Positions 650 through 30,707 of a stretch of DNA of 64,000 nucleotides are shown in pieces. The notes beneath the pieces are model-generated. The model ran no database searches and was not told where the DNA came from. It saw only the letters and a list, made by a program, of their open reading frames with translations. Within the stretch, counting starts at the first letter, position 1; each line of letters starts with the position of its first letter. The translations under genes were made by a program, and so were the position numbers. Location of the stretch: the IMG/VR virus record IMGVR_UViG_3300037087_000760, positions 62,001 to 126,000 of that record; one strand, given 5' to 3'.

Positions 650-1453
650 TTACTTATAATTAGGGATAATCTTGGTTAAATATTCCCATTCCTGAGAAAA
701 TATTGGTGGATCAACAACAACCCATTTACCATCCACTTTTACGATAGCACGGCCACGCTTTAAACCAGTTGGTATTTTATCCCAATTCTGACCTTTCTGA
801 AAAATCATTTCTTGTTGTTGTTTGGAATTTTTTCCATTTAATTGAGATCGTGAAGAATGTGGATATAAGGATTGTGCCACCGATGAAATACTATTTCTGG
901 TGGCATCTCCCTGACGCCAAACCAGATAGTTGATAACATCAGTCGGGGATGGAATGGTGAATACTCTGGAATCAAAACGAGCACCTTTATTTTTTTTAAT
1001 GAGTTTTATGACATCAGATAGTTTAACTAATCCCAATAATTCATCAAATTCCAATGAATTCATTGATGCCGCTAATAACCAAATATAAAATTCTTTATTG
1101 AATGTTTCAGTTACAATGGAAGCGGAATTACTACAAATCTTCTGAACAATTCCATCCCACCAAGGCATTGTTTTAATATCATCAAAATCGGTCATGATGA
1201 TAGAAATTTCATCCGATTGAACAAATCCAATTTTACAACCCTGAGCTTCTTCACAAAGAGCAATAGCGGATTGATTCATCATATTCACAAAATTTTCATC
1301 AAATGGTCTTTTGAACCTCTTAGTGAATGTGTGGAAAGCACGACCATCTACACGGATAAGAGTATATGTTCTCTGAGGGAGTTTACCACGAGTGACTTCC
1401 TCATAATTTTTCATTCTTTCCCCTAAAGAATCTTTCTCTGGTTTCTTACTCAT
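650..1453 (-). CDS. tRNA-His guanylyltransferase-like protein (Thg1/TLP)
   Basis: Motifs RVDGRAFHTFT, QSDEIS, FDSR, YLVWRQGDATRNS, typical of the Thg1 family. Confidence 0.92.
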   Translation of the reverse strand: MSKKPEKDSLGERMKNYEEVTRGKLPQRTYTLIRVDGRAFHTFTKRFKRPFDENFVNMMNQSAIALCEEAQGCKIGFVQSDEISIIMTDFDDIKTMPWWDGIVQKICSNSASIVTETFNKEFYIWLLAASMNSLEFDELLGLVKLSDVIKLIKKNKGARFDSRVFTIPSPTDVINYLVWRQGDATRNSISSVAQSLYPHSSRSQLNGKNSKQQQEMIFQKGQNWDKIPTGLKRGRAIVKVDGKWVVVDPPIFSQEWEYLTKIIPNYK

Positions 1454-1512: not shown

Positions 1513-2193
1513 TTAAGCCAATAATTCTATTTTTCCTTTCAAAATATCTTTCCAACGACACGACTTTCCAGTAATGTGATCAGTTACAACATCTTCTCTT
1601 ATTCTATAAGTCCTTCTTTTTTGACCTCCCCTACTTCCATTTCCAATTTGGTCATTACGAAAATTCTTATTCTTCTCGTAGTTTTTCTTATCTTCGATTA
1701 CTTTTAGTTTCTCATATAATCTCTGATAAGCTATTTCTTCATTTTTTGTTTGGTCTCTTGTGTCTTGACATTTAATTTGAATTCCAGTTGGAATATGAGT
1801 TAATTGAACACAAGAGGCCACTTTATTCACATTCTGACCACCAGCTCCAGAACTACGGATATATTTCTTAGTTATCTCATTATAATTCAACTGAAGGTCT
1901 GTATTAACTTCTGGGTTCATAATTGCCACCGTTACGAAGCTGGTTTGAACCCTACCATTCTTTTCGGTAGGTGGTATCCTCACAAAACAGTGTGATCCAC
2001 TCTCATTACTAAAAAGTTTTTTTACTTTCTCACCTTTCAGTCAAATGGAGGCAAACCCATCTCGTTCTTCTACTTTATATGAGAAATCATTATTTCTACA
2101 CACTTTTGTATAGATGTTGGTTAGATCCTTAACCAATAATTTAGAGTCATTTCCACCCTCGGATGCTCTTATTTCTATTTTAATTGTTTCCAT
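1513..2193 (-). CDS. RF1-like peptide chain release factor lacking domain 1, with in-frame TGA at codon 51
   Basis: ATG at 2193 gives METIKIEIRASEGG...; in-frame TGA at 2043-2041; then ESGSH..RIPPTEKNGRVQTS (PxT motif) and SSGAGGQNVNK (GGQ). Confidence 0.85.
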
Positions 2194-2422
2194 TTATTCT
2201 TTTATTTATTTTTTTAATTATTACATTATCCCAATCTATCATCAACGGTTCTGGTATTTTTATTCCTTTACTGGTGAATTCATTGAGTATTTCCCGTTCT
2301 GTAAAACTCCCCTCAACAATACCATCGGTCCATTGTTGTAACCATAATCCCCAGCTCTTTTTACCCATGATAACACCCTTTAATATATTAGGATGATAAC
2401 TGGATAAATCATCCAATCTCAT
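2180..2422 (-). CDS. hypothetical protein (frame stays open upstream to ~2654)
   Basis: ORF track; frame extends upstream without an in-frame ATG. Confidence 0.5.
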   Translation of the reverse strand: MRLDDLSSYHPNILKGVIMGKKSWGLWLQQWTDGIVEGSFTEREILNEFTSKGIKIPEPLMIDWDNVIIKKINKRINGNN

Positions 2423-4691: not shown

Positions 4692-5042
4692 ATATTCTTA
4701 TTATTTTATTCGTATTCTATTTAAAAAGTTCCAATCCACTTCTTTCATTTTTAATACTCTTTTCTTTTCCTTAATAACAGATTCAACCATCTTTATAAAC
4801 TCAGGGTCATTGAAATCAATTTTCTTAACCTTAATCTTACTGTGCTTTAATATGTCTGATAATTTAGTGTTTGGCATTTTTTCTTTTTTTCTTTTTTAAT
4901 CTGTCTAAAACCATTTGTTTTTCTGAATCTGTATATGTTGTCCAATTTGATATTTCTTCTTTCGTTCTATGACAACCTATACATACTCCATCTTCAAGTG
5001 TACATATAAATAAACAAGGACTTTCTATCATGAATTTATATA

Positions 5043-5429
5043 TTATTTTTTCCTGTCCTTAATTTCTTCTACATCTAATCTATAAGCTTTTCCTTTACCC
5101 GATTCTTCCTCTGCTTTATATCCATAAGTGAAACACATACCAAACTGTAAATATGATGGTTGAATTAATCCACCTTTTACCCATCCAGTTTCGAAATCGA
5201 ACCATCCCCAATAATCAGGTGGTTTTTGCTCTTTTTGATTCTCACTAACTGTTAATTTAACATTAAGTATATCCTTTGGATCATCACCATATAAGCAAGC
5301 CGACATTGGAGTAATACCAAAATGATAGAAATATTCTTTTTTATCATGAGTTAAAGTTTTCACAGCAGTTGTTGTGAAACTTTTAGTGAACTTTACCTTT
5401 TTTACTGGATGTTCATTTAAGTGTTTCAT
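5043..5429 (-). CDS. hypothetical phage protein
   Basis: ORF, ATGA coupling. Confidence 0.7.
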   Translation of the reverse strand: MKHLNEHPVKKVKFTKSFTTTAVKTLTHDKKEYFYHFGITPMSACLYGDDPKDILNVKLTVSENQKEQKPPDYWGWFDFETGWVKGGLIQPSYLQFGMCFTYGYKAEEESGKGKAYRLDVEEIKDRKK

Positions 5430-5815
5430 AATATTTCATTTAATTTCTGTTTTCTATCTTCATTCTTATGAAATTCTTCGTTAATTATTTCTGTTTTTAT
5501 ATGAACATTTTGAATTAAACTAAACGGAACAAATTGAAAAAGAACTGGATATTTTTCTGATATAGGATGACCTCTTTGTATTTCAAAACTATCATAAACA
5601 TTGAAAAATTCAAATAAAATTGATCTATTATCCATCGTATCTTCATTTAAAACAATCGAATAATGTAAATCATCATTCGTCCTCCCAGCAAATTGAATCA
5701 AAGAACTATGATTCATGAGAAATAATCGAACATAGGAATCTACAGCTTCCTCAATATTAAATTTTATTTTGTTTTCGAGATATTCGGAATAAAGATTATA
5801 AGTAGTATCTATCAT
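5426..5815 (-). CDS. hypothetical protein with C-terminal RxxKLxEIL motif
   Basis: Ends DRKQKLNEIL. Confidence 0.7.
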   Translation of the reverse strand: MIDTTYNLYSEYLENKIKFNIEEAVDSYVRLFLMNHSSLIQFAGRTNDDLHYSIVLNEDTMDNRSILFEFFNVYDSFEIQRGHPISEKYPVLFQFVPFSLIQNVHIKTEIINEEFHKNEDRKQKLNEIL

Positions 5816-6310
5816 ATTTATTTTGTTTCCTTATAATACTTATATAACATTTTCAACACTTTGTTTTTATCTCCTATTTCAGTCATACCTTTTTTTAACT
5901 TTCCAATATTTTCAATCCAGAACATAAGTTCATTACAAAATTCAACCTCTCCCTGAGTCCAATCTGGTTTCCAATTCGGATCTTCATTTTGCATCCATTT
6001 GACAAAATCAAGATAATATCCGTAGTATAAATACTCTCCGAATACTTTATTTTCTTCTTTTATTTTACTTTCCTTTGCCATCTTCAAAAGATTCACATAC
6101 AAAATGATTATTAATATCTTTTACCCATTGTAAACTAAATTCATCCCCCTTCTCGGTAAGATGTTCTGATATCCATTGTTTATCTTTTTCATGTTCCAAT
6201 GACTTTTCATCAGTACATTTTTTATTGACAAATAAAAAACATCCATTACAACTTAATGTTTCTAAATATTTTTCAAAAGATTCTTCACTTTTTAAAGGAT
6301 GTTCCATAAT

Positions 6311-6562
6311 TCAATTTACTTTTTTCAAATAAAGTTCATTAGCTAATTTTTGATAACTCGAAGTGGTATTCTTCTTCGTATCCTTTACAACCTGCATTCC
6401 TATAATGACCAAATCATGTAATGCTGTCCAATCACCATTATCAGCAAGATAATCAACGAATTCATCAGGATTCATACCATTTACATAACGAACACCATCA
6501 CGGATTTCACAATTGTATTCTTTCCCGTTTAACTTCAACTTACCTTTTATCCTTTTATCCAT
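6311..6562 (-). CDS. hypothetical phage protein
   Basis: ORF in gene run. Confidence 0.6.
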   Translation of the reverse strand: MDKRIKGKLKLNGKEYNCEIRDGVRYVNGMNPDEFVDYLADNGDWTALHDLVIIGMQVVKDTKKNTTSSYQKLANELYLKKVN

Positions 6563-6624
6563 AATATTAAATGTAAGTTTATTTTTTCAAATAAAAAAAT
6601 TAAGACGGAATTTTATCTGTAAAG

Positions 6625-6696
6625 AGCTGGTGAATGGATTTGAACCATCGTCTATTGAGTACGAATCAATTATTCTACCTACTAAACTACACCAGC
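6625..6696 (-). tRNA. tRNA-Thr(CGT)
   Basis: Cloverleaf; anticodon arm ATTGA-TTCGTAC-TCAAT. Confidence 0.88.
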
Positions 6697-7005
6697 ATTT
6701 CTGTATTGAGTTTTTCTATAATTTTTTCAAGATTTATGATCATTACCATATCTACATTTATCTGCTTTATTGTGATATGGCCTTAGTTTTCCTTTTCTTC
6801 TTTTTCCATAATATAACCACCAAAAGGGTTTATATGATTTATGTTTTCTACAAACACATTCAGAATAAGGTTCGATAGCAAACCAATAAATTCTGAATTC
6901 TTTCCTACTTATGGAAAAATCTTCTAACTTCTTTCTATTTTCTCTCATTTCGTTGGTATTATTTTTTATAACACCTAACGAAAATCTCCTTTCTTTTTCA
7001 TAATT

Positions 7006-7344
7006 TCAAAAAACAAATTCAAATGATGGAATCGTTCTCCAATATCTTTCTTTTTTAACCTTTTTTTCCATCCACTGTTTTCTGTTTTTGGAAATAAGTT
7101 TCCAATTTGGATAACGAATATCCCAATATTCAACTCGATTGGAATAAAGTTTAGTTCCAGTAATTTTTCTTCCGACATAACCCCAACTGGTATATCCACC
7201 ATACCACTTTCCAGATCTATTTTCATTCTTGTGATAACCACAAAAAGAACAACGAAGTTTACCCTCTTGTTCAAGCATCTCTTTTCTCAAACGATTGTAA
7301 ACATACCTGTTATCGGTTGTCTTGTACTCAAATCTTGGTCTCAT
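7006..7344 (-). CDS. small basic Trp/Arg/Lys-rich hypothetical protein
   Basis: ORF with CSFC. Confidence 0.6.
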   Translation of the reverse strand: MRPRFEYKTTDNRYVYNRLRKEMLEQEGKLRCSFCGYHKNENRSGKWYGGYTSWGYVGRKITGTKLYSNRVEYWDIRYPNWKLISKNRKQWMEKKVKKERYWRTIPSFEFVF

Positions 7345-7439
7345 ATGTTTCTAAATTATTTTTTAATAACTTAGAAAACACATCCTTTCCTTTTCATATG
7401 ATTTATATATTTTTGTAATTATATAATGTTTTTTCCATT

Positions 7440-7805
7440 TTAGATTTCATTAGAAAGAAATAAATGAGTATTACCAGCAAATACTAAATCAGAACCGTTC
7501 ACAATCCATCTCTTACTGAAATGTTCATTCTTGTTTATCGTAACAACTGGTGTTTCATTTAACTTAGCTGAATAAATATCAATATCTATTCCTGTTATAG
7601 ATTTACCAGTATGTGAAAATTTCAAAATAGATTTATCAATAAGAATACCTGTTTCTTCTTGCACTTCTCTCACAAGACCATCTTCTGGTGTTTCTCCCTC
7701 TTTGACTTTACCACCCGGTAATGCCCATCCAAATGGTTTCTTCTTTCTTAAAAGAAACAAAATTTCATCCTTTTCGTTTCTTAATATCAATAATACTGTT
7801 TTCAT
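7440..7805 (-). CDS. NUDIX hydrolase
   Basis: Nudix box GGKVKEGETPEDGLVREVQEETG. Confidence 0.9.
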   Translation of the reverse strand: MKTVLLILRNEKDEILFLLRKKKPFGWALPGGKVKEGETPEDGLVREVQEETGILIDKSILKFSHTGKSITGIDIDIYSAKLNETPVVTINKNEHFSKRWIVNGSDLVFAGNTHLFLSNEI

Positions 7806-7827
7806 TTCACATTTTTATTTTAATTAG

Positions 7828-7901
7828 TCGGGGTGAGAGGACTTGAACCTCCGACCTCATGCTCCCAAAGCACGCATTCTAGCCAACTGAACTACACCCC
7901 G
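7828..7901 (-). tRNA. tRNA-Pro(TGG)
   Basis: Canonical cloverleaf, loop TTTGGGA. Confidence 0.93.
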
Positions 7902-7907
7902 ATGGTG

Positions 7908-7981
7908 TGGAGTAGGTGGGAATCGAACCCGCGACCTCCTGATTGCAGGTCAGGTGCTCTAGCCATCTGAGCTACTACCCC
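7908..7981 (-). tRNA. tRNA-Ala(TGC)
   Basis: Cloverleaf, G3-U70, loop CCTGCAA. Confidence 0.9.
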
Positions 7982-7990
7982 ATTTGTTTG

Positions 7991-8064
7991 TGGAGATGAA
8001 GAGAATTGAACTCTCCCAGAAAGTTTGCAGGACTTCCTCGCCAAGCCTTGGTACATGCACCCCC
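7991..8064 (-). tRNA. tRNA-Ala(TGC), atypical D arm
   Basis: G3-U70 acceptor stem, loop CCTGCAA. Confidence 0.8.
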
Positions 8065-8069
8065 AATAA

Positions 8070-8295
8070 AAAGAATCTGTCCAATTTTCCAGTGGAATAA
8101 TCTTGGTAGTTTCAGTGGCCCCTCAATCGGAACATGATTAATCCGCGACAGTACGGTCCGAATCCGTACCCGTATGAATCATCTCAATTACCTCTACTGA
8201 TGATATTAGACCCTCTGGAAAGGGGCTATGATTTAGGTTGGCTTTCCCTATGGGAAGTACTCTCTTATCTACACTCATCTTCAAGCAGATTCTTT
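8070..8295 (-). ncRNA. candidate structured ncRNA inside tRNA array
   Basis: 10-bp terminal inverted repeat AAAGAATCTG/CAGATTCTTT enclosing several nested hairpins; no good ORF. Confidence 0.5.
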
Positions 8296-8449
8296 GGTGT
8301 GGATTTCTTACCGTATTTCAACACTTTGGTAAGGGTTAATTCATTTCATCCACAAATACCCTGTTACTGTTCCGAATCTGTCCTCAGACAGTCTATCACA
8401 ACGGATTAAGGTGTACAATTTGATAGAAAACACCTGTCGAAAGTTCCTG

Positions 8450-8524
8450 TGTTCTTGAACGGCCTCGAACCGTTGACCCCCGCCCTGTCAAGGCGATACT
8501 CTGAACCAACTGAGCTACAAGAAC
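8450..8524 (-). tRNA. tRNA-Val(GAC)
   Basis: Canonical cloverleaf. Confidence 0.92.
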
Positions 8525-8533
8525 AAATACGGG

Positions 8534-8661
8534 CGAGGAAAGTAGGACTTTAACCTACACCGATTGCTTTAACCACAACCTGTTCTTCCCGACTGTTTAA
8601 ATACCCGCTCAACGATATTTACCGTTGAATTATTTAAACAAATCCCTTAAACTATCTCCCC
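8534..8661 (-). ncRNA. tRNA-like RNA with long hairpin inserted in the D loop
   Basis: GGGGAGA/TTTCCTC acceptor stem, GTAGG-TTAAAGT-CCTAC T arm, ~55-nt hairpin in D loop. Confidence 0.6.
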
Positions 8662-8737
8662 ATATATTTTCATTTGTATTATATTACAAACAAAATGGTC
8701 AATTTTGTCCTGAATATAGTACATTTTCAAAGAACTG

Positions 8738-8812
8738 TGCGACTGCAGGGATTTGGACCCCGGACCCTCTGCTTGTAAGGCAGATGCTCTGAACCAACTG
8801 AGCTACAATCGC
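8738..8812 (-). tRNA. tRNA-Val(TAC)
   Basis: Cloverleaf. Confidence 0.9.
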
Positions 8813-8817
8813 TTGTG

Positions 8818-8903
8818 TAGGACTACCCGGACTCGAACCGGGATTATACTTCTCGTCTCCACTTTGTAGGAGTGGGATGTTTATCCAGTTACACCATAGT
8901 CCT
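8818..8903 (-). tRNA. tRNA-Val(TAC), long variable region
   Basis: Loop CCTACAA. Confidence 0.82.
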
Positions 8904-8913
8904 ATTAATTTTG

Positions 8914-8986
8914 AGCCGGTGAAGGGACTTGAACCCATATCTCAGCCTTACCAAGGCCACATTTTAACCATTGATACTACACCAGC
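8914..8986 (-). tRNA. tRNA-Thr(GGT)
   Basis: Loop TTGGTAA. Confidence 0.88.
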
Positions 8987-8992
8987 TTATGT

Positions 8993-9070
8993 GATCTGCG
9001 TTTTCCCCTTTAAACTACTGACCATCCTTAATCGGATAATCAGATTGGAGTCGAACCAACAATTCAGATC
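8993..9070 (-). ncRNA. circularly permuted tRNA-like module (YrlA-like order T arm, closed acceptor stem, D arm)
   Basis: GATCTG..GTTGG-TTCGACT-CCAAT-CTGATTATCC-gattaa-GGATGGTCAG-TAGTTTAAAGGGGAAAAC-G-CAGATC. Confidence 0.7.
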
Positions 9071-9073
9071 TCG

Positions 9074-9147
9074 TGGAGTGTAAGGGAATCGAACCCTTGG
9101 CGTTAGACTGCCAGCCTAACATTTTAAACCATCTGAACTAACACCCC
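9074..9147 (-). tRNA. tRNA-Ala(GGC)
   Basis: Cloverleaf, G3-U70. Confidence 0.9.
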
Positions 9148-9163
9148 GTTCATTATATTTTTG

Positions 9164-9236
9164 AGCCAGTAGAGGGATTCGAACCCCCATCCCATGTTTA
9201 CAAAACACGAATAATCAACCATTATACTATACTGGC
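9164..9236 (-). tRNA. tRNA-Thr(TGT)
   Basis: Cloverleaf. Confidence 0.9.
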
Positions 9237-9243
9237 TTTTGTG

Positions 9244-9328
9244 AGCCGACTGAGGGATTCGAACCCCCGCGGAGCCGAAGCTCTCCTGATTACAAGTCAG
9301 GTGGTATCAACCACTAACCGAAGTCGGC
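9244..9328 (-). tRNA. tRNA-Thr(TGT), long variable arm
   Basis: Loop CTTGTAA; variable arm GAGC-TTCG-GCTC. Confidence 0.88.
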
Positions 9329-9333
9329 GTTTG

Positions 9334-9436
9334 TGGATTGGATGGGATTCAGACCCATTCGGTGATCAAACCGTTTCGAAATTACCCTCGGTGTCAACCG
9401 ATACTGTGGAGTCAAACCACAACAGATTCTCAACCC
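9334..9436 (-). ncRNA. tRNA-like RNA with multiple T-loop-like hairpins
   Basis: GGGTTG/CAATCC-A ends (G3-U70) and four short hairpins. Confidence 0.45.
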
Positions 9437-9864
9437 TTTTTAATTACATTTTCTTTCCACCAAAGAATTTCATTTTGTATTTCTTCACACTTTTCATATT
9501 CTTCGTTTAATATCAATTGTTGTAATTTTTCTTCTAATTTATTTAAATTGTTTATTTTATCTCTACACATTATAATTTCATCGGTAACTTTTTTACAGAT
9601 AAATATACTTTTTTTATCAATTTTGTTCTCATATTTCGTGTCAACCAATTTTGAAAATTCATTTAATAATTTTTCAGTTTTTAAACTATCAACAACAAAA
9701 TGGGTTTTACTCCGATTAACATACCTTTTATAATCATTCACATCTTTATAGTGTTCATTTATCCAATTATCATTATTATAAGAATAAATACAAAATTTAT
9801 CTATTTCTTCATCTGTTTCTAATTGAAAACAAGCAAGTCCATCTATATTTTTAAATATTTTCAT
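9430..9864 (-). CDS. hypothetical protein with C-terminal UVR (UvrB/C) motif
   Basis: LEEKLQQLILNEEYEKCEEIQNEI. Confidence 0.65.
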   Translation of the reverse strand: MKIFKNIDGLACFQLETDEEIDKFCIYSYNNDNWINEHYKDVNDYKRYVNRSKTHFVVDSLKTEKLLNEFSKLVDTKYENKIDKKSIFICKKVTDEIIMCRDKINNLNKLEEKLQQLILNEEYEKCEEIQNEILWWKENVIKKG

Positions 9865-9880
9865 TTCATTTATTTTTTTG

Positions 9881-9953
9881 TATCCTTAACAGGATTCGAA
9901 CCTGTACACAAAATTTAGGAAATTTTGATGCTCATCCATTACATCATAAGGAC
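9881..9953 (-). tRNA. tRNA-Arg(CCT)
   Basis: Loop TTCCTAA. Confidence 0.87.
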
Positions 9954-9964
9954 ATTTTTAATTT

Positions 9965-10450
9965 TCATTTATGACTTAGATAATATTGATATAATTGATT
10001 TTCATTTTCGAAATATAATATATTTTCTGGTGGAAAGTAGTTTACCATTTCTCTACCTCTTATTATCAAACCGTCATAACCATTCTTCTTCATTTCTTCA
10101 GCTATTGTTGTGTTTTTACTAAAAAAGGAATTATCACGATTCACATTATGTTCTTTACAATATTTAGTTACCAAATCTTGGAGAAACATTTCAGCTTCAT
10201 TTGTACTAAAAAGAATCTTTGGTTTTTTTGGTATTGCGTTGACAACAAAATAAACTTTCCCATATTCTCTTGCCATTTCTCTATTACCAAGAGCTGCTGT
10301 ATATAATCCCGAACCATATTTAGCCATTCCATTATTTTCTCCATAAAAATCCTTTAGACCTCGTAGTGTTACATTTTTTCGTTTCCATGACAAATAATCT
10401 TTATGTTCAGATTCATTCAAAAAATCATGAAGTTTGTAAATGTGATTCAT
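9965..10450 (-). CDS. putative ADP-ribosyltransferase-like protein with capsid-targeting-like N-terminus
   Basis: MNHIYKLHDFLNE; TLRG..YGSGLYT...GYDGLI..EMV. Confidence 0.5.
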   Translation of the reverse strand: MNHIYKLHDFLNESEHKDYLSWKRKNVTLRGLKDFYGENNGMAKYGSGLYTAALGNREMAREYGKVYFVVNAIPKKPKILFSTNEAEMFLQDLVTKYCKEHNVNRDNSFFSKNTTIAEEMKKNGYDGLIIRGREMVNYFPPENILYFENENQLYQYYLSHK

Positions 10451-10469
10451 ATATCCTTTTTATTTTTTG

Positions 10470-10545
10470 TCGGGTAAGCGGGCTTCGCTCCCGCGTGCTC
10501 TTGATCCCAAATCAAGTGAGATAAACTGAACTCCTCTACTACCCG
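10470..10545 (-). tRNA. tRNA-Pro(TGG)
   Basis: Loop TTTGGGA; atypical T loop. Confidence 0.82.
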
Positions 10546-10554
10546 TTAATTTTG

Positions 10555-10628
10555 TATTCCCAGAGGGATTCAAACCCCCAATCTTCTGATCCGTAGTCAG
10601 ATATTCTATTCAGTTGAACTATGGGAAC
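10555..10628 (-). tRNA. tRNA-Arg(ACG)
   Basis: Loop CTACGGA. Confidence 0.9.
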
Positions 10629-10674
10629 ATTATTCATCACATTATATATATCAAATCTTTTCAGATTTGTTTTG

Positions 10675-10760
10675 TCGAAGAAGCCGGACTTGAACCGACA
10701 AGGGTATATTACCACTACGCTCCAAACGTAGACCGCTACCAGTTACGGACCTATTCCTCG
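10675..10760 (-). tRNA. tRNA-Pro(TGG), long variable arm
   Basis: Loop TTTGGAG; C1-G72, A73. Confidence 0.82.
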
Positions 10761-10766
10761 GTCTTG

Positions 10767-10852
10767 TCTGGGTGAGAGGACTCGAACCTCCAAAGACATT
10801 ATGTCACTCGCCTCCGAAACGAGTTCGCTACCAGTTACGGACTTACACCCAG
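10767..10852 (-). tRNA. tRNA-Pro(CGG), long variable arm
   Basis: Loop TTCGGAG; C1-G72, A73. Confidence 0.82.
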
Positions 10853-10863
10853 ATAATTTTTTG

Positions 10864-10945
10864 AACCTGTGGTGGGATTCGAACCCACATTTACAGCTCC
10901 AGTTACGGTAATCTGACGTTCGTAGCGTCAGTCGGCTACACAGGC
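10864..10945 (-). tRNA. tRNA-Arg(ACG)-like lacking a D arm, with enlarged variable arm
   Basis: GCCTGTG-TAGCCGA-CTGACG-CTACGAA-CGTCAG-long arm-T arm. Confidence 0.65.
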
Positions 10946-10960
10946 ATTTTTAATTTTTTG

Positions 10961-11031
10961 TATTCCCAACGGGATTCGAAACCGTATTTTCTGACTGAGA
11001 ATCAGGAGTCCTTCCATTAGACGATGGGAAC
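10961..11031 (-). tRNA. tRNA-Glu(CTC)
   Basis: Loop TTCTCAG. Confidence 0.87.
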
Positions 11032-11043
11032 ATTTATTCATTG

Positions 11044-11115
11044 TATTCGGTAGGGGAATTGAACCCCTATGTACAGGTTGAAAACCTGTCGGACTAACCG
11101 TTATCCTAACCGAAC
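11044..11115 (-). tRNA. tRNA-Glu(TTC)
   Basis: Loop TTTTCAA. Confidence 0.87.
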
Positions 11116-11120
11116 TTTTG

Positions 11121-11203
11121 TACTGCGGACGGGACTCGAACCCGTACACCCTTTCGGGTCCAGATTGAAAGTCTGGTCACTTAGGCCATTTGTATACCGC
11201 AGT
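11121..11203 (-). tRNA. tRNA-Glu(TTC), long variable arm
   Basis: Loop CTTTCAA; variable arm ACCC-GAAA-GGGT. Confidence 0.85.
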
Positions 11204-11224
11204 GTGTATCTTATTTTTATTTTG

Positions 11225-11305
11225 CTCTCCCAAGGGGAATCGAACCCCTATCCTGACATTGAAAGTGTCAAATCCTCTGCTTACGCTCCGTTAGACGATG
11301 GGAAA
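11225..11305 (-). tRNA. tRNA-Glu(TTC), enlarged D loop
   Basis: Loop CTTTCAA. Confidence 0.85.
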
Positions 11306-11311
11306 AGTTTT

Positions 11312-11331
11312 ATTTCAAGATGTCAAAGAAC
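11312..11331 (-). promoter_or_regulatory. boxA-like antitermination element
   Basis: GTTCTTTGACATCTTGAAAT, identical to 27166-27185 in the other array. Confidence 0.6.
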
Positions 11332-11343
11332 CAAATTGGATAT

Positions 11344-11456
11344 TGGTAAATGAGATTGGACTTGAACCAATATCGAATAGTCTGAAACGACTACCGACCA
11401 CCTGATAGGTTCATCGGTTCATGATTCCGATTACTTACTATCTAACTCACTCATTA
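11344..11456 (-). ncRNA. tRNA-like RNA with encoded CCA, extra hairpins and a CAT-containing loop
   Basis: AATGAG/CTCATT stem, ATTGG-TTCAAGT-CCAAT T arm, ACCA end. Confidence 0.5.
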
Positions 11457-11469
11457 TTTTAAAGAACAT

Positions 11470-11501
11470 AAAAAAACCCGGCTTTCTTTCGAATGTCGGG
11501 T
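11470..11501 (-). terminator. attenuator terminator of tRNA array 1
   Basis: ACCCG..TTC-GAAA-GAA..CGGGT followed by U run. Confidence 0.8.
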
Positions 11502-11548
11502 GTGGGGTTGAAAGAACTACTTCTTTCAATATATTGATGAGGGGATTG

Positions 11549-11662
11549 TCAATCAAATATAATACCTACACCCAGAGCAAACGCTGTCTCTTCTACCACT
11601 ATGGTAGTGACTTCCGTTGGCCTCTCAGGTCGTGGGTTCAATATTTGGTTTATCATCAACAT
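11549..11662 (-). CDS. leader peptide of tRNA array 1 (MLMINQILNPRPERPTEVTTIVVEETAFALGVGIIFD)
   Basis: 37-aa ORF; 17 of 18 consecutive codons are P/R/E/T/V/A; contains antiterminator TGGGTGTAGG. Confidence 0.85.
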   Translation of the reverse strand: MLMINQILNPRPERPTEVTTIVVEETAFALGVGIIFD

Positions 11663-11827
11663 TTTATTTCTTGTATTGTTTTGTTATATATTTATTATTA
11701 TAAGTCTGTTTTTTCCATTTTTATTTCAGACTACAAAATTATGTAATTATTCTGAGATAAAAAAATTTTTAGATAACTTTTTTCAAAATCACCTATTTAT
11801 CTTTATAGTATTAAAAAATAAAAAGGT

Positions 11828-12542
11828 TTATTTTTTCTTTGTTGTTTTCTTTTTGGGTTGTTCTTTAGGTTCTTCTTTCACAGGATTTCCTTTTGGTTTA
11901 AATTCCACTTTACCTTTTTCTATTAATTCAAATCCTGTTTGTTTCATTATATAATCTGATGATTTTTCATAACTCTTATTAGCGAAGTCGTATACAGCGA
12001 AACACTGGAACATCAGAAAAGGATTATGACTAATCACGATCACTTCACATTTATATTTCCATATAAGTTTTGAGATTAGATTATTGTACAAAGTCATACT
12101 CCTTATACTAAATCCATTATCCACTTCATCGAGTACGATAAGAGTTTTTTCAGGTATAATTTTCGGATATAATTTTTCCAAGAACATGCCCATATAAATT
12201 ACTGAACTTTCTCCGTGAGATTTGTTTCTTGTTTGGAATCCACCCGAACTAAGATAAGCACAAGCGTCGAAGGCAACCATCATATCAGATCCGTTATTAA
12301 AAGAATATTTTCTCATATGAATGTTCTATTTCAACAAATTCAGCTAATTTTTTAAAATCACTTTCAAATAAAGAATTTGTTGACATATCGTTTTTCGTAC
12401 CTCTAAGAGCATGAAATAAAGAACTTTTTCCACATCCATTTTCACCAACTATACATAAAGCCTTTATAGTTTTTATGTCTGAGAAATCATATTCATCCCC
12501 AGCTTTAAAACATCTAAAATCTTTTTTAATTTTTATTTTCAT
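11828..12542 (-). CDS. ABC/AAA-type ATPase split into two frames at TTT-TAA (frameshift or pseudogene)
   Basis: Walker A GENGCGKS in 12297-12542; signature SHGE, Walker B LIVLDE and H-loop ISHN in 11828-12316. Confidence 0.75.
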
Positions 12543-26027: not shown

Positions 26028-26194
26028 ATTATCAATTAATTTTTTTTATTCAAAAATTTGACATAATTTTGTAGTTCGTTTGTGAAAAGTTTTTTATTCC
26101 AGTTATCTTGGGAAGTCGGACAATGGAATCCGATTTCCCTCGAAACAGGAATAAAATAAAAAATAAAAAATATCGTTCTTAAACTTATTGAAGA

Positions 26195-26405
26195 TTTCGG
26201 TTCTTCCGTCATAATTTTACACGGCTTTTTCGGAGAAATCAAAGACGCGTTAAGATTTCGATGATGAAAAGGTTTTCCCTCAGTGGGATTAACTATTAGG
26301 TATCTGAGATGATGGGTAGCTCTAAGCAAGAACCGATACGTACTCAAGGAGTCCCCGCTGGGTGTGGGGCCAAGTAAGTGGAAGTGATCCCCCTCTTAAC
26401 CCCTT
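26195..26405 (+). ncRNA. candidate structured ncRNA
   Basis: GC-elevated intergenic region; TCGGTTCTT/AAGAACCGA long-range pair; preceded by the same 22-mer that precedes the Y-RNA-like elements at 36.6 kb. Confidence 0.45.
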
Positions 26406-26435
26406 TTTCTTTTTTCAAAATGTAAATATGAAATT

Positions 26436-26744: not shown

Positions 26745-26840
26745 ATGATACAGACATTGAAACATAGTAAACATTTTAGTTCATCATCCAAGTGGTTTAC
26801 CACTATCGGGGTTGAAGTGAAATTGCTATGTCAGGTGTAA
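26745..26840 (+). CDS. leader peptide of tRNA array 2 (MIQTLKHSKHFSSSSKWFTTIGVEVKLLCQV)
   Basis: 31-aa ORF; 13 consecutive K/H/S/F/W codons; antiterminator TATCGGGGTT at 26804-26813. Confidence 0.88.
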   Translation: MIQTLKHSKHFSSSSKWFTTIGVEVKLLCQV

Positions 26841-26863: not shown

Positions 26864-26897
26864 AAAAAACCCCGATACGAAAGTGTTGGGGTTTTTT
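26864..26897 (+). terminator. attenuator terminator of tRNA array 2
   Basis: AAAAAACCCCGATAC-GAAA-GTGTTGGGGTTTTTT. Confidence 0.88.
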
Positions 26898-26935
26898 GTT
26901 TTATATCGTTCTTTAAAATAGTGTAATTGTGTAAT

Positions 26936-27064
26936 GGGGAAATAGCTCAGTTGGTAGAGCGCTAAAAATACTTATTCTGGTATTCTCGTTGTGAAACGAA
27001 GCGGTAGAATGAGTTACTTCGACTTCTAATCGAGAGGTCGTGGGTTCGAGTCCCACTTTCTCCG
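26936..27064 (+). ncRNA. tRNA/Y-RNA chimera: tRNA body (TCT loop) with extra arm between D and anticodon arms
   Basis: Normal acceptor, D and T arms; inserted hairpin with GTATTC/AGCGG internal loop and GTTACTTC motif shared with RNAs beside Ro60. Confidence 0.75.
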
Positions 27065-27069
27065 CACAT

Positions 27070-27153
27070 GGTGATTGTAGTCCGTAAATGGAAGCGGGAC
27101 GGGTTGTGACCCCGTAGGTATACTCCGTGAGGGTTCGATTCCCTTCTTTCACC
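27070..27153 (+). tRNA. tRNA-His(GTG), encoded G-1, long variable region
   Basis: Loop TTGTGAC; C73. Confidence 0.75.
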
Positions 27154-27165
27154 CACCTAATAAAT

Positions 27166-27185
27166 GTTCTTTGACATCTTGAAAT
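27166..27185 (+). promoter_or_regulatory. boxA-like antitermination element
   Basis: GTTCTTTGACATCTTGAAAT. Confidence 0.6.
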
Positions 27186-27219
27186 GAAATTTTGTGTTGA
27201 ATACCTAATCAACACAAAT

Positions 27220-27290
27220 GGAGAGGTAGCTCAATTCATAGAGCCTATGGGTTTACCGTAGAGATGGTGATTTGATTCCACCCCTCTCCA
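27220..27290 (+). tRNA. atypical or pseudo tRNA (loop GGTTTAC)
   Basis: Perfect acceptor stem, degenerate T arm, no U33. Confidence 0.5.
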
Positions 27291-27295
27291 CATCT

Positions 27296-27423
27296 GGGGG
27301 GATAGCTCAGTTGGTAGAGCATTCGGCTGGGTAGAACAATCATCATAATACAGTGCACACAGATTTATGATTGAAAGGTTCTACCGAAACTGATGGTCGC
27401 TGGTTCGAATCCAGCTCCCCCCA
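27296..27423 (+). ncRNA. tRNA with long hairpin inserted in the anticodon loop (intron-like)
   Basis: Canonical D and T arms; GGTAGAAC...GTTCTACC hairpin in the loop. Confidence 0.7.
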
Positions 27424-27426
27424 CAA

Positions 27427-27543
27427 TCGAGATTTGGTTCGAATCCAATTTATAGTTTAATATGGTAAAACACGAGGTTCTGAAATGTAGGTTCGATCCC
27501 TACCAAACCCTTCGGGATGGTAGTTTAACTGGTAAAACGCAGA
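27427..27543 (+). ncRNA. tandem permuted tRNA-elbow modules (T arm then D arm; YrlA-like)
   Basis: TTGG-TTCGAAT-CCAA..TAGTTTAATATGGTAAAAC, then GTAGG-TTCGATC-CCTAC-..CC-TTCG-GG..-TAGTTTAACTGGTAAAAC. Confidence 0.65.
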
Positions 27544-27548
27544 CAATA

Positions 27549-27678
27549 GGGGGAATAGCTCAAAGGTAGAGTATAGATTCTGAGAACAAATATTCCCTTT
27601 TAAGTTAAGTGGCGATGTATTCAGTTACTTCGGTTGTCTTAAAAACAAAAGATACGGGTTCGAATCCCGTTTCCCCCG
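27549..27678 (+). ncRNA. tRNA/Y-RNA chimera (TAA loop) with inserted arm
   Basis: Same architecture as 26936-27064, with GTTACTTC motif. Confidence 0.7.
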
Positions 27679-27680
27679 CA

Positions 27681-27750
27681 ATGTAGTAGTGATTTGTAGT
27701 GTTACTTCGACTCGAAATCCAAAATGAACACTCAATAATTTTCTCTACAT
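27681..27750 (+). ncRNA. minimal Y-RNA-like stem-loop
   Basis: ATGTAG/CTACAT stem, internal loop, GTGTTACTTC motif. Confidence 0.6.
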
Positions 27751-27751
27751 T

Positions 27752-28114
27752 TTAATATTCTGTGTAATGAGGTATTTGAACATTGTACTTTTTCAAATAA
27801 TGATTTATATTTTCTTCATTATTCGTTATCTCTATTTGTTTTAATAATTTTTGATCATCTAAATCATAAGGTACTTTTGTGTTCAACCAAAAATTAATTT
27901 GATACATTGTATCATAATCAACTACTTCAATTTCTATTGGTAGTAAATCATGTACATCTTTATCATATTCTTTATTACCTGTATCATGAGATAAATATTC
28001 ATAAATAATGTATTCACTCCACCATTTATTTAAAAATTGTTTTATCTTTTCTTCTGGTGAAAAACTACTAACATCTTCGTTTATGAATTCAGTGAAGTTC
28101 TTTATATTTTTCAT
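27752..28114 (-). CDS. hypothetical protein with capsid-targeting-like N-terminus, antisense inside tRNA array
   Basis: MKNIKNFTEFINE. Confidence 0.7.
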   Translation of the reverse strand: MKNIKNFTEFINEDVSSFSPEEKIKQFLNKWWSEYIIYEYLSHDTGNKEYDKDVHDLLPIEIEVVDYDTMYQINFWLNTKVPYDLDDQKLLKQIEITNNEENINHYLKKYNVQIPHYTEY

Positions 28115-28153
28115 GATAGTATATATTTAATTATAAAAATCATTTTTCTTTAT

Positions 28154-28228
28154 GGTGGTTGTGGCTCAGTTGGTCAGAGCGTCAGATTGTGGATCTGAAG
28201 GTCGTGGGTTCGAGACCCACCATCCACC
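28154..28228 (+). tRNA. tRNA-His(GTG), encoded G-1
   Basis: Canonical cloverleaf. Confidence 0.92.
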
Positions 28229-28241
28229 CCAAATAATTACT

Positions 28242-28315
28242 GGACTTTAAGCTAATCAAGTTGGAAAGCGCTACCCTGAAGAGGTAGAGAGTCGGAGCGT
28301 TACCGAAAAAGTCCA
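28242..28315 (+). tRNA. tRNA-Phe(GAA), atypical T loop
   Basis: Loop CTGAAGA. Confidence 0.75.
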
Positions 28316-28320
28316 CAAAT

Positions 28321-28393
<73 letters not shown>

Positions 28394-28407
28394 CCTGAAT
28401 GAATAAT

Positions 28408-28478
28408 GTGGTTGTAGCTGAGTAGGTTAGCACTGGCGTGAAGCCCCAGAGACACAGGTTCGATCCCTGTCATCCACA
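28408..28478 (+). tRNA. tRNA-Phe(GAA), atypical anticodon loop
   Basis: Loop GTGAAGC. Confidence 0.7.
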
Positions 28479-28487
28479 CAAAAAATT

Positions 28488-28573
28488 GGAAGATGAAACG
28501 GACAGGGTTTCCGTAACCGCCCGCTAAGCGTGTTGTTCCTATCTGGAATGGGTTTCGATTACTCCATCTTCCG
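28488..28573 (+). tRNA. tRNA-Ser(GCT)
   Basis: Long variable arm, G73. Confidence 0.75.
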
Positions 28574-28595
28574 CAAAAATTAATGTAGGTTAAAT

Positions 28596-28679
28596 GGAGA
28601 GTTGGCAGAGCGGTCTAATGCGGCGGTCTTGAAAACCGTTGACCATCTTGGTCCGGGGGTTCGAATCCCTCACTCTCCG
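28596..28679 (+). tRNA. tRNA-Ser(TGA)
   Basis: Canonical cloverleaf. Confidence 0.93.
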
Positions 28680-28688
28680 CAATAATTT

Positions 28689-28781
28689 GGAAGGTTAACT
28701 GGTCAGGGTTTTTGCCAGCACTGTCTTGAAAACAGTTGGTTCGTCTAAACAACGGATGGGGTTCGAGACCTCAGCTTTCCG
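28689..28781 (+). tRNA. tRNA-Ser(TGA)
   Basis: Loop CTTGAAA, long variable arm. Confidence 0.85.
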
Positions 28782-28791
28782 CACTGTAAAT

Positions 28792-28873
28792 ATGGAAGTA
28801 GTTTAAATGTAAAACACCATCCGGCCAAGGGTGGAGATGTACCGCGGTTTAGGTTCGAATCCTACCTTCCATG
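28792..28873 (+). tRNA. atypical tRNA (loop contains GCC/CCA; G73), possibly Trp-like
   Basis: Good acceptor, D and T arms; irregular anticodon loop. Confidence 0.5.
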
Positions 28874-28878
28874 CAAAA

Positions 28879-28962
28879 GCAACCGTGGCCGAGAGGACAG
28901 GCTCCTGACTTTTAATCAGAGTGGAGAAATCCACAACACAGGTTCGATCCCTGTCGGTTGCA
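28879..28962 (+). tRNA. tRNA-Lys(TTT), long variable arm
   Basis: Loop CTTTTAA; variable arm GTGGA-GAAA-TCCAC. Confidence 0.85.
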
Positions 28963-28986
28963 CAAATCATCCATCTTCATCTGGAT

Positions 28987-29059
28987 GACCTCGTAGCTCA
29001 GTTGGTAGAGCATCGCACTTTTAATGCGAGGGTCATGGGTTCGAGTCCCATCGGGGTCA
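28987..29059 (+). tRNA. tRNA-Lys(TTT)
   Basis: Canonical cloverleaf. Confidence 0.93.
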
Positions 29060-29068
29060 CTAAAATTT

Positions 29069-29143
29069 GGGTTTGTATCATAATTGAGTTAGTGAAATTG
29101 ACTCTTAATCAATGCTATGTGGGTTCGAGTCCCACCAAACCCA
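29069..29143 (+). tRNA. tRNA-Lys(CTT)
   Basis: Loop CTCTTAA. Confidence 0.87.
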
Positions 29144-29153
29144 CTAACGATAC

Positions 29154-29228
29154 GGGTCTGTATCACAACAAGAGTAGTGAAACTGTCTTTTAAACAGTGC
29201 TATGAGGGTTCGAATCCCTCTGGGCCCA
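29154..29228 (+). tRNA. tRNA-Lys(TTT)
   Basis: Loop CTTTTAA. Confidence 0.85.
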
Positions 29229-29233
29229 CAAAA

Positions 29234-29315
29234 GCAACATTGGCCGAGAGGTTAGGCTCCTGACTCTTAATCAGAGAACGAAAGTTCAACACAGGTTCGA
29301 TCCCTGTATGTTGCA
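29234..29315 (+). tRNA. tRNA-Lys(CTT), long variable arm
   Basis: Paralog of 28879-28962. Confidence 0.85.
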
Positions 29316-29319
29316 CAAT

Positions 29320-29390
29320 ACGAGTATGGTGTAACAGTAGCATAAAAGTCTCCAAAACTTTTGGTCGGGGTGCGAATCCTCGTACTCGTG
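29320..29390 (+). tRNA. tRNA-Trp(CCA)
   Basis: Loop CTCCAAA, G73. Confidence 0.87.
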
Positions 29391-29395
29391 CATAT

Positions 29396-29477
29396 ACGAC
29401 AGCTCATTGGTGTGACCAGCCGGCTCCAACCCGGTAATCCGTAAGGGTGGTTAGAGGTCCGAATCCTCTCTGTCGTG
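29396..29477 (+). tRNA. tRNA-Trp(CCA), atypical D arm and long variable arm
   Basis: Loop CTCCAAC, G73. Confidence 0.7.
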
Positions 29478-29500
29478 CTAAAAAGCGAAATGGTTGTAAT

Positions 29501-29587
29501 GGTGAGTAAACCTACAAAGCGTAGGGCCTGTCTGCTAAACAGAGTGTTCGGATAAAACCGGATGTGGGGCGGAACCACTGCTCACCG
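29501..29587 (+). tRNA. tRNA-Ser(GCT), atypical T loop
   Basis: Loop CTGCTAA, long variable arm. Confidence 0.78.
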
Positions 29588-29594
29588 CTCAAAT

Positions 29595-29759
29595 GGTATA
29601 AGGTCCTTTGATAAAGGTAATAGCGGTTTAGTTATCGAGGTGTTGTAAGTCTTTCTGTCCAAAGGAAAGCTGGCCAAACCACCGAGGATTCCCGAAAGGG
29701 ATTACCCGAACGCAATATCGGTTATGATAACTTGTGGTTTGAATCCACAACTTATATCT
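29595..29759 (+). ncRNA. ~165-nt tRNA-like RNA with large multibranch insertion
   Basis: GGTATAAG/CTTATATC closing stem, TTGTGG-TTTGAAT-CCACAA T arm, nested hairpins. Confidence 0.6.
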
Positions 29760-29782
29760 GGAAAATTTTATATATAACTTTG

Positions 29783-30607: not shown

Positions 30608-30613
30608 ATTTTT

Positions 30614-30701
30614 GGAAGTCCCCATGTGGAGTGGTTAGCAATCTCGAAAATTGTGAAGTCGGTGAGATTCCGATGTAAGGGTTCGACTCCCTTGACTTCC
30701 G
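30614..30701 (+). tRNA. tRNA-Ser(CGA)
   Basis: Loop CTCGAAA, long variable arm, G73. Confidence 0.78.
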
Positions 30702-30707
30702 CACAAT

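Follow-up and report, generated by a model that had tools for sequence, protein, structure and literature searches.

The codons of a short leader open reading frame (ORF) on the minus strand of a large phage genome mirror the set of tRNA genes located downstream of it, and this leader probably acts as a ribosome-mediated (leader-peptide) transcription attenuator of the tRNA array. The DNA analysed, here called the window, is a 64,000-nt stretch corresponding to positions 62,001–126,000 of the 211-kb IMG/VR contig IMGVR_UViG_3300037087_000760; the leader ORF is at nt 11549–11662 (minus strand) and the array at nt 6624–11298 (minus strand). A codon-matched attenuator had been proposed at this locus by a first-pass annotation made from the sequence alone, and the proposal gained computational support from the uniqueness of the match, a paralogous leader in the same window, codon bias, folding models and the recurrence of the design elsewhere. 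The association of leader with array is in itself close to certain, while translation of the ORF, stalling, the direction of the switch and its physiological trigger are what we infer from sequence and modelling.

The minus-strand leader ORF

The leader ORF has 37 codons, with an ATG start, a TGA stop and a second in-frame ATG at codon 3, and public gene callers annotated it as a gene in two assemblies, starting from the second ATG. The start has an A-rich upstream context and lacks a Shine-Dalgarno (SD) motif, as do 34 of the 37 long genes of the window (their start regions are 52% A); since only three of these genes carry an SD-like motif, its absence from the leader is normal for this phage. 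Codons 10–27 (nt 11582–11635, minus strand) form the run PRPERPTEVTTIVVEETA. Re-reading of the sequence confirmed that 17 of these 18 codons specify P, R, E, T, V or A, the tRNA types of the downstream array, and also that codon choice is diverse, with all four Thr codons present as well as AGG, CGA, GAG, GTC, ACG and GCG. Across the 47,420 stop-free 18-codon windows in the six frames of the 64 kb, the leader is the sole site scoring 16 or 17 for this amino acid set, the runner-up scoring 15. Of the 14 anticodon species in the array, 11 are addressed by the run, more than synonymous resampling under the codon usage of the phage would give (P = 0.015). Both of its Arg codons avoid AGA, which accounts for 64% of Arg codons in the genes of the phage; the tRNA that reads AGA is encoded in a second array, on the plus strand, and not in this one.

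A similarity of this kind could be a matter of composition, if translation of a structured, G+C-rich intergenic region in an otherwise A+T-rich genome favoured amino acids that G+C-rich codons specify, and the array happened to hold the same types. The codons for P, R, A, T, V and E are indeed relatively rich in G+C, and the ORF lies inside a long hairpin. Against this, only one of the six frames matches the set, and the other leaders described below match sets with A+T-rich codons (K/H/S/F/W, I/M/N/Q and L/Y).

The minus-strand tRNA array

The array encodes only tRNAs for Glu, Arg, Pro, Thr, Ala and Val, and has five interspersed ORFs, one of them a NUDIX hydrolase gene (nt 7440–7805, minus strand). 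With default settings, ARAGORN called 17 minus-strand tRNAs between nt 11298 and nt 6624 (four Glu, two Arg, two Pro, four Thr, two Ala, three Val), and Rfam gave 16–18 tRNA calls; a relaxed ARAGORN threshold gave 21 (four Glu, three Arg, four Pro, four Thr, three Ala, three Val). The earlier count of 21 tRNAs of six types thus stands for the types, and for the number at the relaxed threshold, but not under default calling, and four of the 21 are marginal or non-canonical (nt 7990–8060, 10676–10756, 10766–10852 and 10863–10945). A 4-base anticodon is predicted for the last of these (minus strand) and for a plus-strand tRNA at nt 28792–28874 (accg and gcca). Val, Thr and Glu tRNAs of 84–87 nt occur at nt 8817–8903, 9243–9328 and 11120–11203 (minus strand).

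Between the terminator of the leader and the first tRNA-Glu there is a tRNA-like element (nt 11340–11452, minus strand) that was missed in the earlier count. It has a 7-bp acceptor stem, a T arm and a CCA end, together with an aberrant core and extra internal helices; ARAGORN called it only at a very relaxed threshold, and it has no Rfam match. It is followed by an inter-tRNA motif, GTTCTTTGACATCTTGAAAT (nt 11312–11331, minus strand), identical to nt 27166–27185 (plus strand).

Promoter, terminator and flanking motifs

A candidate Bacteroidota-type -7 box, TAATTTTG, was read from the sequence at nt 11734–11741 (minus strand), 72 nt upstream of the leader ATG. It aligns with TATTTTTG, located 73 nt upstream of the plus-strand leader ATG, and boxes of this type are found upstream of host tRNA genes too, so that a promoter role appears plausible. 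Further downstream, a conserved 5' untranslated region (UTR) block (nt 11673–11693, minus strand), common to the plus-strand leader, holds a copy of TAATATATAA with one mismatch. The motif TAATATATAA recurs 4–30 nt upstream of many same-strand gene starts, leaders included (sites at nt 2756, 5036, 19535, 22220, 26713, 33822, 46212, 47238, 47639, 49501 and 58661), and could mark promoters or start sites in a phage-specific manner.

Just 3' of the codon run is the putative 5' strand of an antiterminator, segment 2 (TGGGTGTAGG; nt 11565–11574, minus strand). Its partner, segment 3 (nt 11497–11507, minus strand), would be used in common by the antiterminator and the terminator, as the 5' arm of the latter: TGGGTGTAGG (nt 11574–11565) pairs with CCCACACCCG (nt 11506–11497) through 6+2 bp flanking one A.C mismatch. 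The predicted intrinsic terminator (nt 11470–11501, minus strand) consists of an interrupted G+C stem of about -10 kcal/mol followed by U7. Both the complementarity and the hairpin with its U tract are where the first-pass annotation had placed them.

Starting 2 nt after the U tract is a pre-tRNA 5'-leader motif, GTTCTTTAAAATAATG (nt 11452–11467, minus strand), which is also found at nt 26908–26923 (plus strand), 10 nt after the U tract of the plus-strand leader. In Flavobacterium, Chryseobacterium and Flavobacteriaceae genomes (five host loci), the same 16 nt stand 0–15 nt before tRNA genes, both at positions following a TTTG/TAnnTTTG promoter and in the spacers of co-transcribed tRNAs. Because of this placement, GTTCTTTAAAATAATG is taken to be a transcribed pre-tRNA leader element, possibly a processing signal, and the idea that it is a promoter bypassing the attenuator was rejected. 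With the motif only 2–10 nt behind the U tract, there is no room for a promoter between terminator and first tRNA, and the arrays would therefore be reached only by read-through of the terminator, unless there are internal promoters further downstream. A scan with GTTCTTTAAAATAATG returned many tRNA-rich stretches on other large phage contigs, and a related motif, GTTCTTTGACAT(N)TTGAAAT, also occurs directly 5' of tRNAs.

A paralogous leader on the plus strand

The window carries a second leader ORF of 31 codons (nt 26745–26840, plus strand), the run of which, KHSKHFSSSSKWF (nt 26760–26798), is composed of K, H, S, F and W. It precedes a tRNA array at nt 26936–30702 (plus strand) for His, Phe, Ser, Lys, Trp and Arg(UCU), with three further, insertion-bearing tRNAs, and is the single 13/13 window for the set of this array in all six frames of the window. 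A candidate antiterminator strand (nt 26804–26813, plus strand) is a perfect 10-nt complement of nt 26868–26877, which lie within a predicted terminator hairpin with a U6 tract (nt 26864–26897, plus strand). The two leaders can be aligned with each other and have in common a TAnnTTTG box 72–73 nt before the ATG, the 5'-UTR block, an ORF within a long helix, a terminator and then GTTCTTTAAAATA(A/G)TG. The two arrays had been described as having non-overlapping sets, which is true of their anticodons (Arg CCU/ACG/CCG versus UCU) but not of their amino acids, Arg being common to both.

Orthologues of the plus-strand leader are present in two relatives, with 76–86% nucleotide identity overall (one protein of that relative lineage has 65% amino acid identity). 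Invariant in both are the 44-nt run (100% identical), the stop codon, the antiterminator and the arms of the terminator, the loop of which differs. These orthologues bear on the suggestion that the ORFs encode functional micropeptides without a regulatory role, since the peptide of this leader is conserved, and gene callers do annotate the minus-strand ORF. The conservation is, however, at the nucleotide level and includes every synonymous site of the run; in addition, the peptides of different arrays have no common sequence beyond the first few residues of leaders from the same genome, and it is composition, not sequence, that co-varies with the array. We regard a micropeptide function as extremely improbable.

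Three tRNAs of the plus-strand array (nt 26936–27064, 27296–27423 and 27549–27678, plus strand) have insertions of about 55 nt and are of uncertain identity. The insertions are too short for group I introns, and one apparently separates the D arm from the anticodon arm. A promoter-like sequence, TTTGACATAATTTTGTAGT, heads gene-free, G+C-richer stretches upstream of the plus-strand leader (nt 26050–26425, plus strand) and of the third leader described below (nt 10748–11880 of sequence L347). No Rfam match was found in the stretches behind TTTGACATAATTTTGTAGT; the one in L347 has a weak tmRNA/tRNA-like match at nt 11465–11551.

Further arrays in the same genome

The first-pass annotation had predicted that the remaining amino acids (Gly, Asp, Asn, Gln, Tyr, Cys, Leu, Ile and Met) would be covered by one or more further arrays with matching leaders of their own. 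The same phage is also represented by a 229,679-bp scaffold in the European Nucleotide Archive (ENA), which was walked over positions 39,191–208,539 (74% of its length). Following the prediction in this way led to two more tRNA arrays, and no other tRNAs were found in this part of the genome. The third leader (L347) has the run MIMTQNIQNMIINQI and a strong terminator, downstream of which come a bL12 gene and then tRNAs for Ile, Asn (three), Ile, Met, Gln, Met and Gln (five); a lone Leu tRNA lies upstream of this array. In the fourth (L349), the run LYYLYLYLY is followed by a terminator, a Tyr tRNA and seven Leu tRNAs, and each of the four Leu codons of the run (CTA, TTG, TTA and CTC) has a Leu anticodon species of its own in the array. 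The prediction was thus borne out for Ile/Asn/Met/Gln and for Tyr/Leu, but no array for Gly, Asp or Cys was found in the 74% inspected. When each of the four leaders was scored against each of the four arrays, the log-odds on the diagonal were 20.7, 11.6, 16.9 and 15.0, and those off the diagonal ranged from 3.3 to 6.7, a pattern that argues against a compositional origin of the matches.

The first nine codons of the minus-strand leader (MLMINQILN; nt 11636–11662, minus strand) look similar to the run of I, M, N and Q codons in the third leader (L347, nt 11908–11952), a hint that all leaders may be paralogous, with runs that changed in step with the arrays. The gene for ribosomal protein bL12 (L347, nt 12156–12533) is predicted to lie inside the third attenuator-controlled unit. 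The Tyr/Leu array is followed by a GIY-YIG gene and then a class-I aminoacyl-tRNA-synthetase-like gene (L349, nt 4882–6901).

Matched leaders in other phages

The same design was found at about a dozen other arrays on unrelated large-phage contigs: a short, ATG-started ORF mirrors the array, a G+C hairpin and its U tract come next, and the 3' part of the ORF is complementary to the 5' arm of the hairpin. Examples are the runs WSSRRRSSSR before a Ser/Arg/Trp array, HIQPQPQQHPQ before Pro/His/Gln and FEFSFEAAEDD before Phe/Glu/Asp/Ala; such set-specific matches in unrelated phages are hard to reconcile with chance. Further matched arrays are Asp/Glu/Val/Leu/Trp, Arg/His/Leu/Gln/Ser, Cys/Gln/Phe/Pro/Glu/Leu and Val/Pro/Ala/Gly/Gln/Ser, as well as larger mixed ones.

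The permutation test of leader composition against array content that had been suggested by the first-pass annotation was carried out on 24 non-redundant arrays, with loci taken from motif scans and upstream regions scored by set-size-normalised log-odds (best segment in any frame). The array's own tRNA set ranked first in 9 of the 24, compared with 1.0 expected (P = 3e-7), two of the arrays being orthologous to each other, which leaves a slight redundancy. The summed own-set score was 204, against 124 ± 9 for permuted sets (maximum 170), and none of 20,000 permutations reached the observed value. In our view the window scan, the permutation test and the 4x4 matrix already refute chance or composition as the source of the match, and we give that explanation a negligible probability. 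Codon choice also follows the arrays: in 13 pooled leaders, a cognate anticodon is present in the array for 186 of the 216 degenerate in-set codons, compared with 171 expected (P = 0.001, strict wobble), under a null that applies the codon usage of the present phage to all contigs and is therefore approximate.

The design is common rather than universal, as several arrays examined in other phages have no such leader. In Flavobacterium phage immuto, a 51-codon ORF precedes Ser-Glu-Gln tRNAs and has neither a matched run nor a terminator, and no tRNA features were seen in the part of Tenacibaculum phage PTm1 that was inspected. In another group of phages, five arrays of two tRNA-Met genes each show the order Bacteroidota-type promoter, hairpin with U tract, motif and tRNAs; the hairpin is not accompanied by a Met-rich ORF, and these arrays may be under a different kind of control.

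Folding models and the proposed switch

The minus-strand transcription unit would comprise, in order, a promoter, a 5' UTR of about 65 nt, the 37-codon ORF, an intrinsic terminator, the pre-tRNA leader motif and the tRNAs, and the RNA immediately 3' of the run could base-pair with the terminator 5' arm. Under rapid translation of the run, the ribosome would advance toward the stop codon and cover segment 2 while the polymerase makes the terminator, and the array would be off. If charged tRNA of any type in the array is scarce, the ribosome would stall within the run, the antiterminator would form and the polymerase would read through into the array. The outcome would be a demand-driven negative feedback on the phage tRNA supply, separate for each array by way of its own composite leader; its trigger could be a host tRNA pool that does not suit the codon usage of the phage, or host tRNAs being lost in the course of infection.

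Such a switch is in line with partition-function folding of the transcript downstream of a ribosome whose footprint was assumed to extend to A site + 13 nt, the choice between terminator and antiterminator depending in these models on ribosome position. At equilibrium, the terminator of the minus-strand leader has a probability of 1.0 without a ribosome and with a ribosome at codon 27 or later, and that of the antiterminator is 0.19–1.0 with the A site at codons 6–26 (above 0.8 at codons 6–7, 10–13, 18 and 23; below 0.4 at codons 14–17, 19–20 and 25–26). The pairing probability of segment 2 (nt 11565–11574) reaches up to 1.0 with the ribosome inside the run. In the plus-strand leader, the modelled switch occurs at codons 10–16. 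At equilibrium, the strong terminators of other leaders stay intact in the model, which would be so for the classical trp leader too; used alone, equilibrium folding was too conservative for half of the leaders, and was replaced by a truncated-transcript (kinetic) proxy that asks for the partner of the terminator 5' arm before the 3' arm is transcribed. By this measure, the 5' arm is paired upstream when the ribosome is in or before the run (P mostly 0.7–0.9; 0.5–0.9 in the minus-strand leader), and upstream pairing falls to about 0–0.3 within a few codons of the end of the run in nearly all of 13 leaders. In one case (L013, minus strand) the drop comes about four codons ahead of the last matched codons. 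In silico, the minus-strand locus presents a complete short ORF, clustered regulatory codons, a predicted terminator with no later promoter and an antiterminator that in the models depends on the ribosome.

Could the run be read without a ribosome? Its codons might be shown directly to anticodons, as in a T-box with several specifiers, or might act as a tRNA sponge. The codons of the run are by definition complementary to the anticodons of the array, and T-box leaders too end in a terminator/antiterminator pair. However, at gathering as well as permissive thresholds Rfam detected only tRNAs in and near the leader, with no T-box, no His, Leu, Thr or Trp leader and no other family; an in-frame ATG before the run and a stop codon after it are always present; the switch point follows a ribosome-sized footprint; and the free RNA buries most of the run in a helix. 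A ribosome-free sensor is accordingly considered very unlikely.

Several observations weigh against attenuation by a stalled ribosome, at the minus-strand locus or in general. The minus-strand terminator is weak, with its interrupted stem of only some -10 kcal/mol, and because of the interruption a generic terminator consensus scan did not list it. The equilibrium model shows a clear switch for only about half of the leaders, strong terminators staying intact in the others, so that the stronger switch pattern depends on the kinetic proxy and on the assumed footprint. Several leaders form the antiterminator even without a ribosome, and their untranslated transcripts would read through. In the third leader, the ORF continues through its terminator. 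The proposed mechanism does not account for the tRNA-like element directly after the minus-strand terminator. Several arrays of other phages lack a leader of this type, and the tRNA-Met pairs have the hairpin alone. For the minus-strand leader, no orthologue was recovered with the exact 21-mer of the run in viral contigs, with a peptide-level pattern in metagenome contigs or with the 5'-UTR motif, and the six assemblies that contain this leader are identical, so that there is no population variation to read. In a relative's contig, no counterpart of the minus-strand array was present within 10 kb of its plus-type leader. BLAST searches of the minus-strand leader region and of another phage's leader gave no match among GenBank phages, and a protein-based search for relatives with two array-adjoining genes returned the source contig alone.

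Some of these points would fit equally with an ORF that is translated and senses tRNA supply but has another output, such as Rho-dependent termination, transcript stability or processing, or a reversed logic like that of pyrBI, in which a closely trailing ribosome melts the terminator. The extension of the third ORF through its terminator, the weakness of the minus-strand terminator and the persistence of the terminator in the equilibrium model of several leaders all point in that direction. On the other hand, G+C hairpins with U tracts are present throughout the leaders, and nearly all of the 13 modelled leaders have, immediately 3' of the run, a strand complementary to the terminator 5' arm. 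In most leaders, moreover, the stop codon is about 50 nt before the U tract (50–53 nt in 8 of the 11 measured), which puts the hairpin out of reach of a terminating ribosome. We consider a different output unlikely, and attenuation by stalling within the run a good deal more probable than otherwise for the minus-strand leader.

The phage and its probable host

The DNA of this phage has a G+C content of about 29%, and the same phage is contained in around 20 assemblies further to the ENA scaffold. Its host appears to be a member of the Bacteroidota, probably of the Flavobacteriia, to judge from the scarcity of SD motifs and the A-rich starts, the nearest relatives of one of its proteins, and the tRNA motif that it has in common with host genomes. 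The closest GenBank relative of this large protein from the window is in a 735-kb Mahaphage genome (45% amino acid identity), followed by Tenacibaculum and Chryseobacterium phages. Mahaphages are a clade of huge phages with reported hosts in the Bacteroidetes (PMC7162821).

The arrays are surrounded by a set of translation-related genes, which includes a Thg1-like tRNA-His guanylyltransferase gene (nt 650–1453, minus strand) and release-factor-like pieces called as two genes (nt ~1513–2300, minus strand). A search for cultured relatives based on Thg1 returned distant phages only. An AAA/ABC-type ATPase is split between two overlapping ORFs (nt 11828–12542, minus strand) of 81 aa (with Walker A) and 162 aa (with Walker B), which could reflect a frameshift or a programmed feature.

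Comparison with known systems

The tRNA arrays of large phages are viewed as compensation for a codon-usage mismatch or for loss of host tRNAs, and textbook accounts assign the control of tRNA genes to promoters rather than to attenuation. To our knowledge, it is not known how the expression of such arrays is timed and dosed. No leader ORF or attenuator ahead of phage tRNA arrays is described in the full-text literature searched, which was incomplete, or in the Mahaphage paper (PMC7162821), and within the limits of that search leader-peptide attenuation of tRNA genes is rated as a new form of ribosome-mediated attenuation. If correct, a leader peptide that spells the contents of an array would gauge decoding capacity directly and in a self-correcting way, and the reach of classic attenuation would come to include RNA products and many amino acids together. 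The sequence rule predicts which tRNAs form one regulatory unit, and it correctly predicted two further arrays in the same genome and about a dozen elsewhere, which is unusual for a finding made from sequence. It is also relevant to the conflict between phage and host over tRNA pools.

A broader interpretation is offered tentatively, and it is rather doubtful that all of its parts hold together. The leaders might provide a multiplexed surveillance of the tRNA pool, in which an array is hardly expressed before ribosomes detect that the very tRNAs it encodes are missing, whether through host anticodon-nuclease defences, phage-induced breakdown of host tRNAs or a host pool unable to decode the codons of the phage. 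Replacement tRNAs would then be induced, and would shut off their own synthesis once supplied. The leader codons would represent an evolvable bar code that follows array content, and the system would be widespread in huge phages of Bacteroidota, in one array also controlling a bL12 gene.

Among known regulators, the closest parallel is with the leaders of amino acid operons (trpL, hisL, pheL, leuL, thrL and ilvL), some of which have mixed codons, such as thrL (Thr and Ile) and ilvL (Ile, Val and Leu). The phage leaders resemble the trpL type in having a short ORF, a cluster of regulatory codons, mutually exclusive hairpins, a U tract and a logic in which stalling would lead to read-through. 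They differ in that they precede tRNAs (and in one case also a ribosomal protein gene) and not enzymes, that a single leader joins up to six or more amino acid types and samples anticodon species, that they are encoded by phages with SD-less genomes of Bacteroidota type, and that several of them would, according to the models, default to read-through when not translated. T-box leaders (RF00230) likewise sense tRNA status and choose between terminator and antiterminator in a 5' leader; unlike the phage leaders, they do so without translation, by binding one uncharged tRNA via a specifier codon and the T-box sequence. A further similarity is to pheM-pheST, the Phe-tRNA synthetase operon of E. 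coli, where leader-peptide attenuation also controls a component of translation that serves the codons being sensed, although pheM is concerned with a single amino acid, a protein product and a cellular gene.

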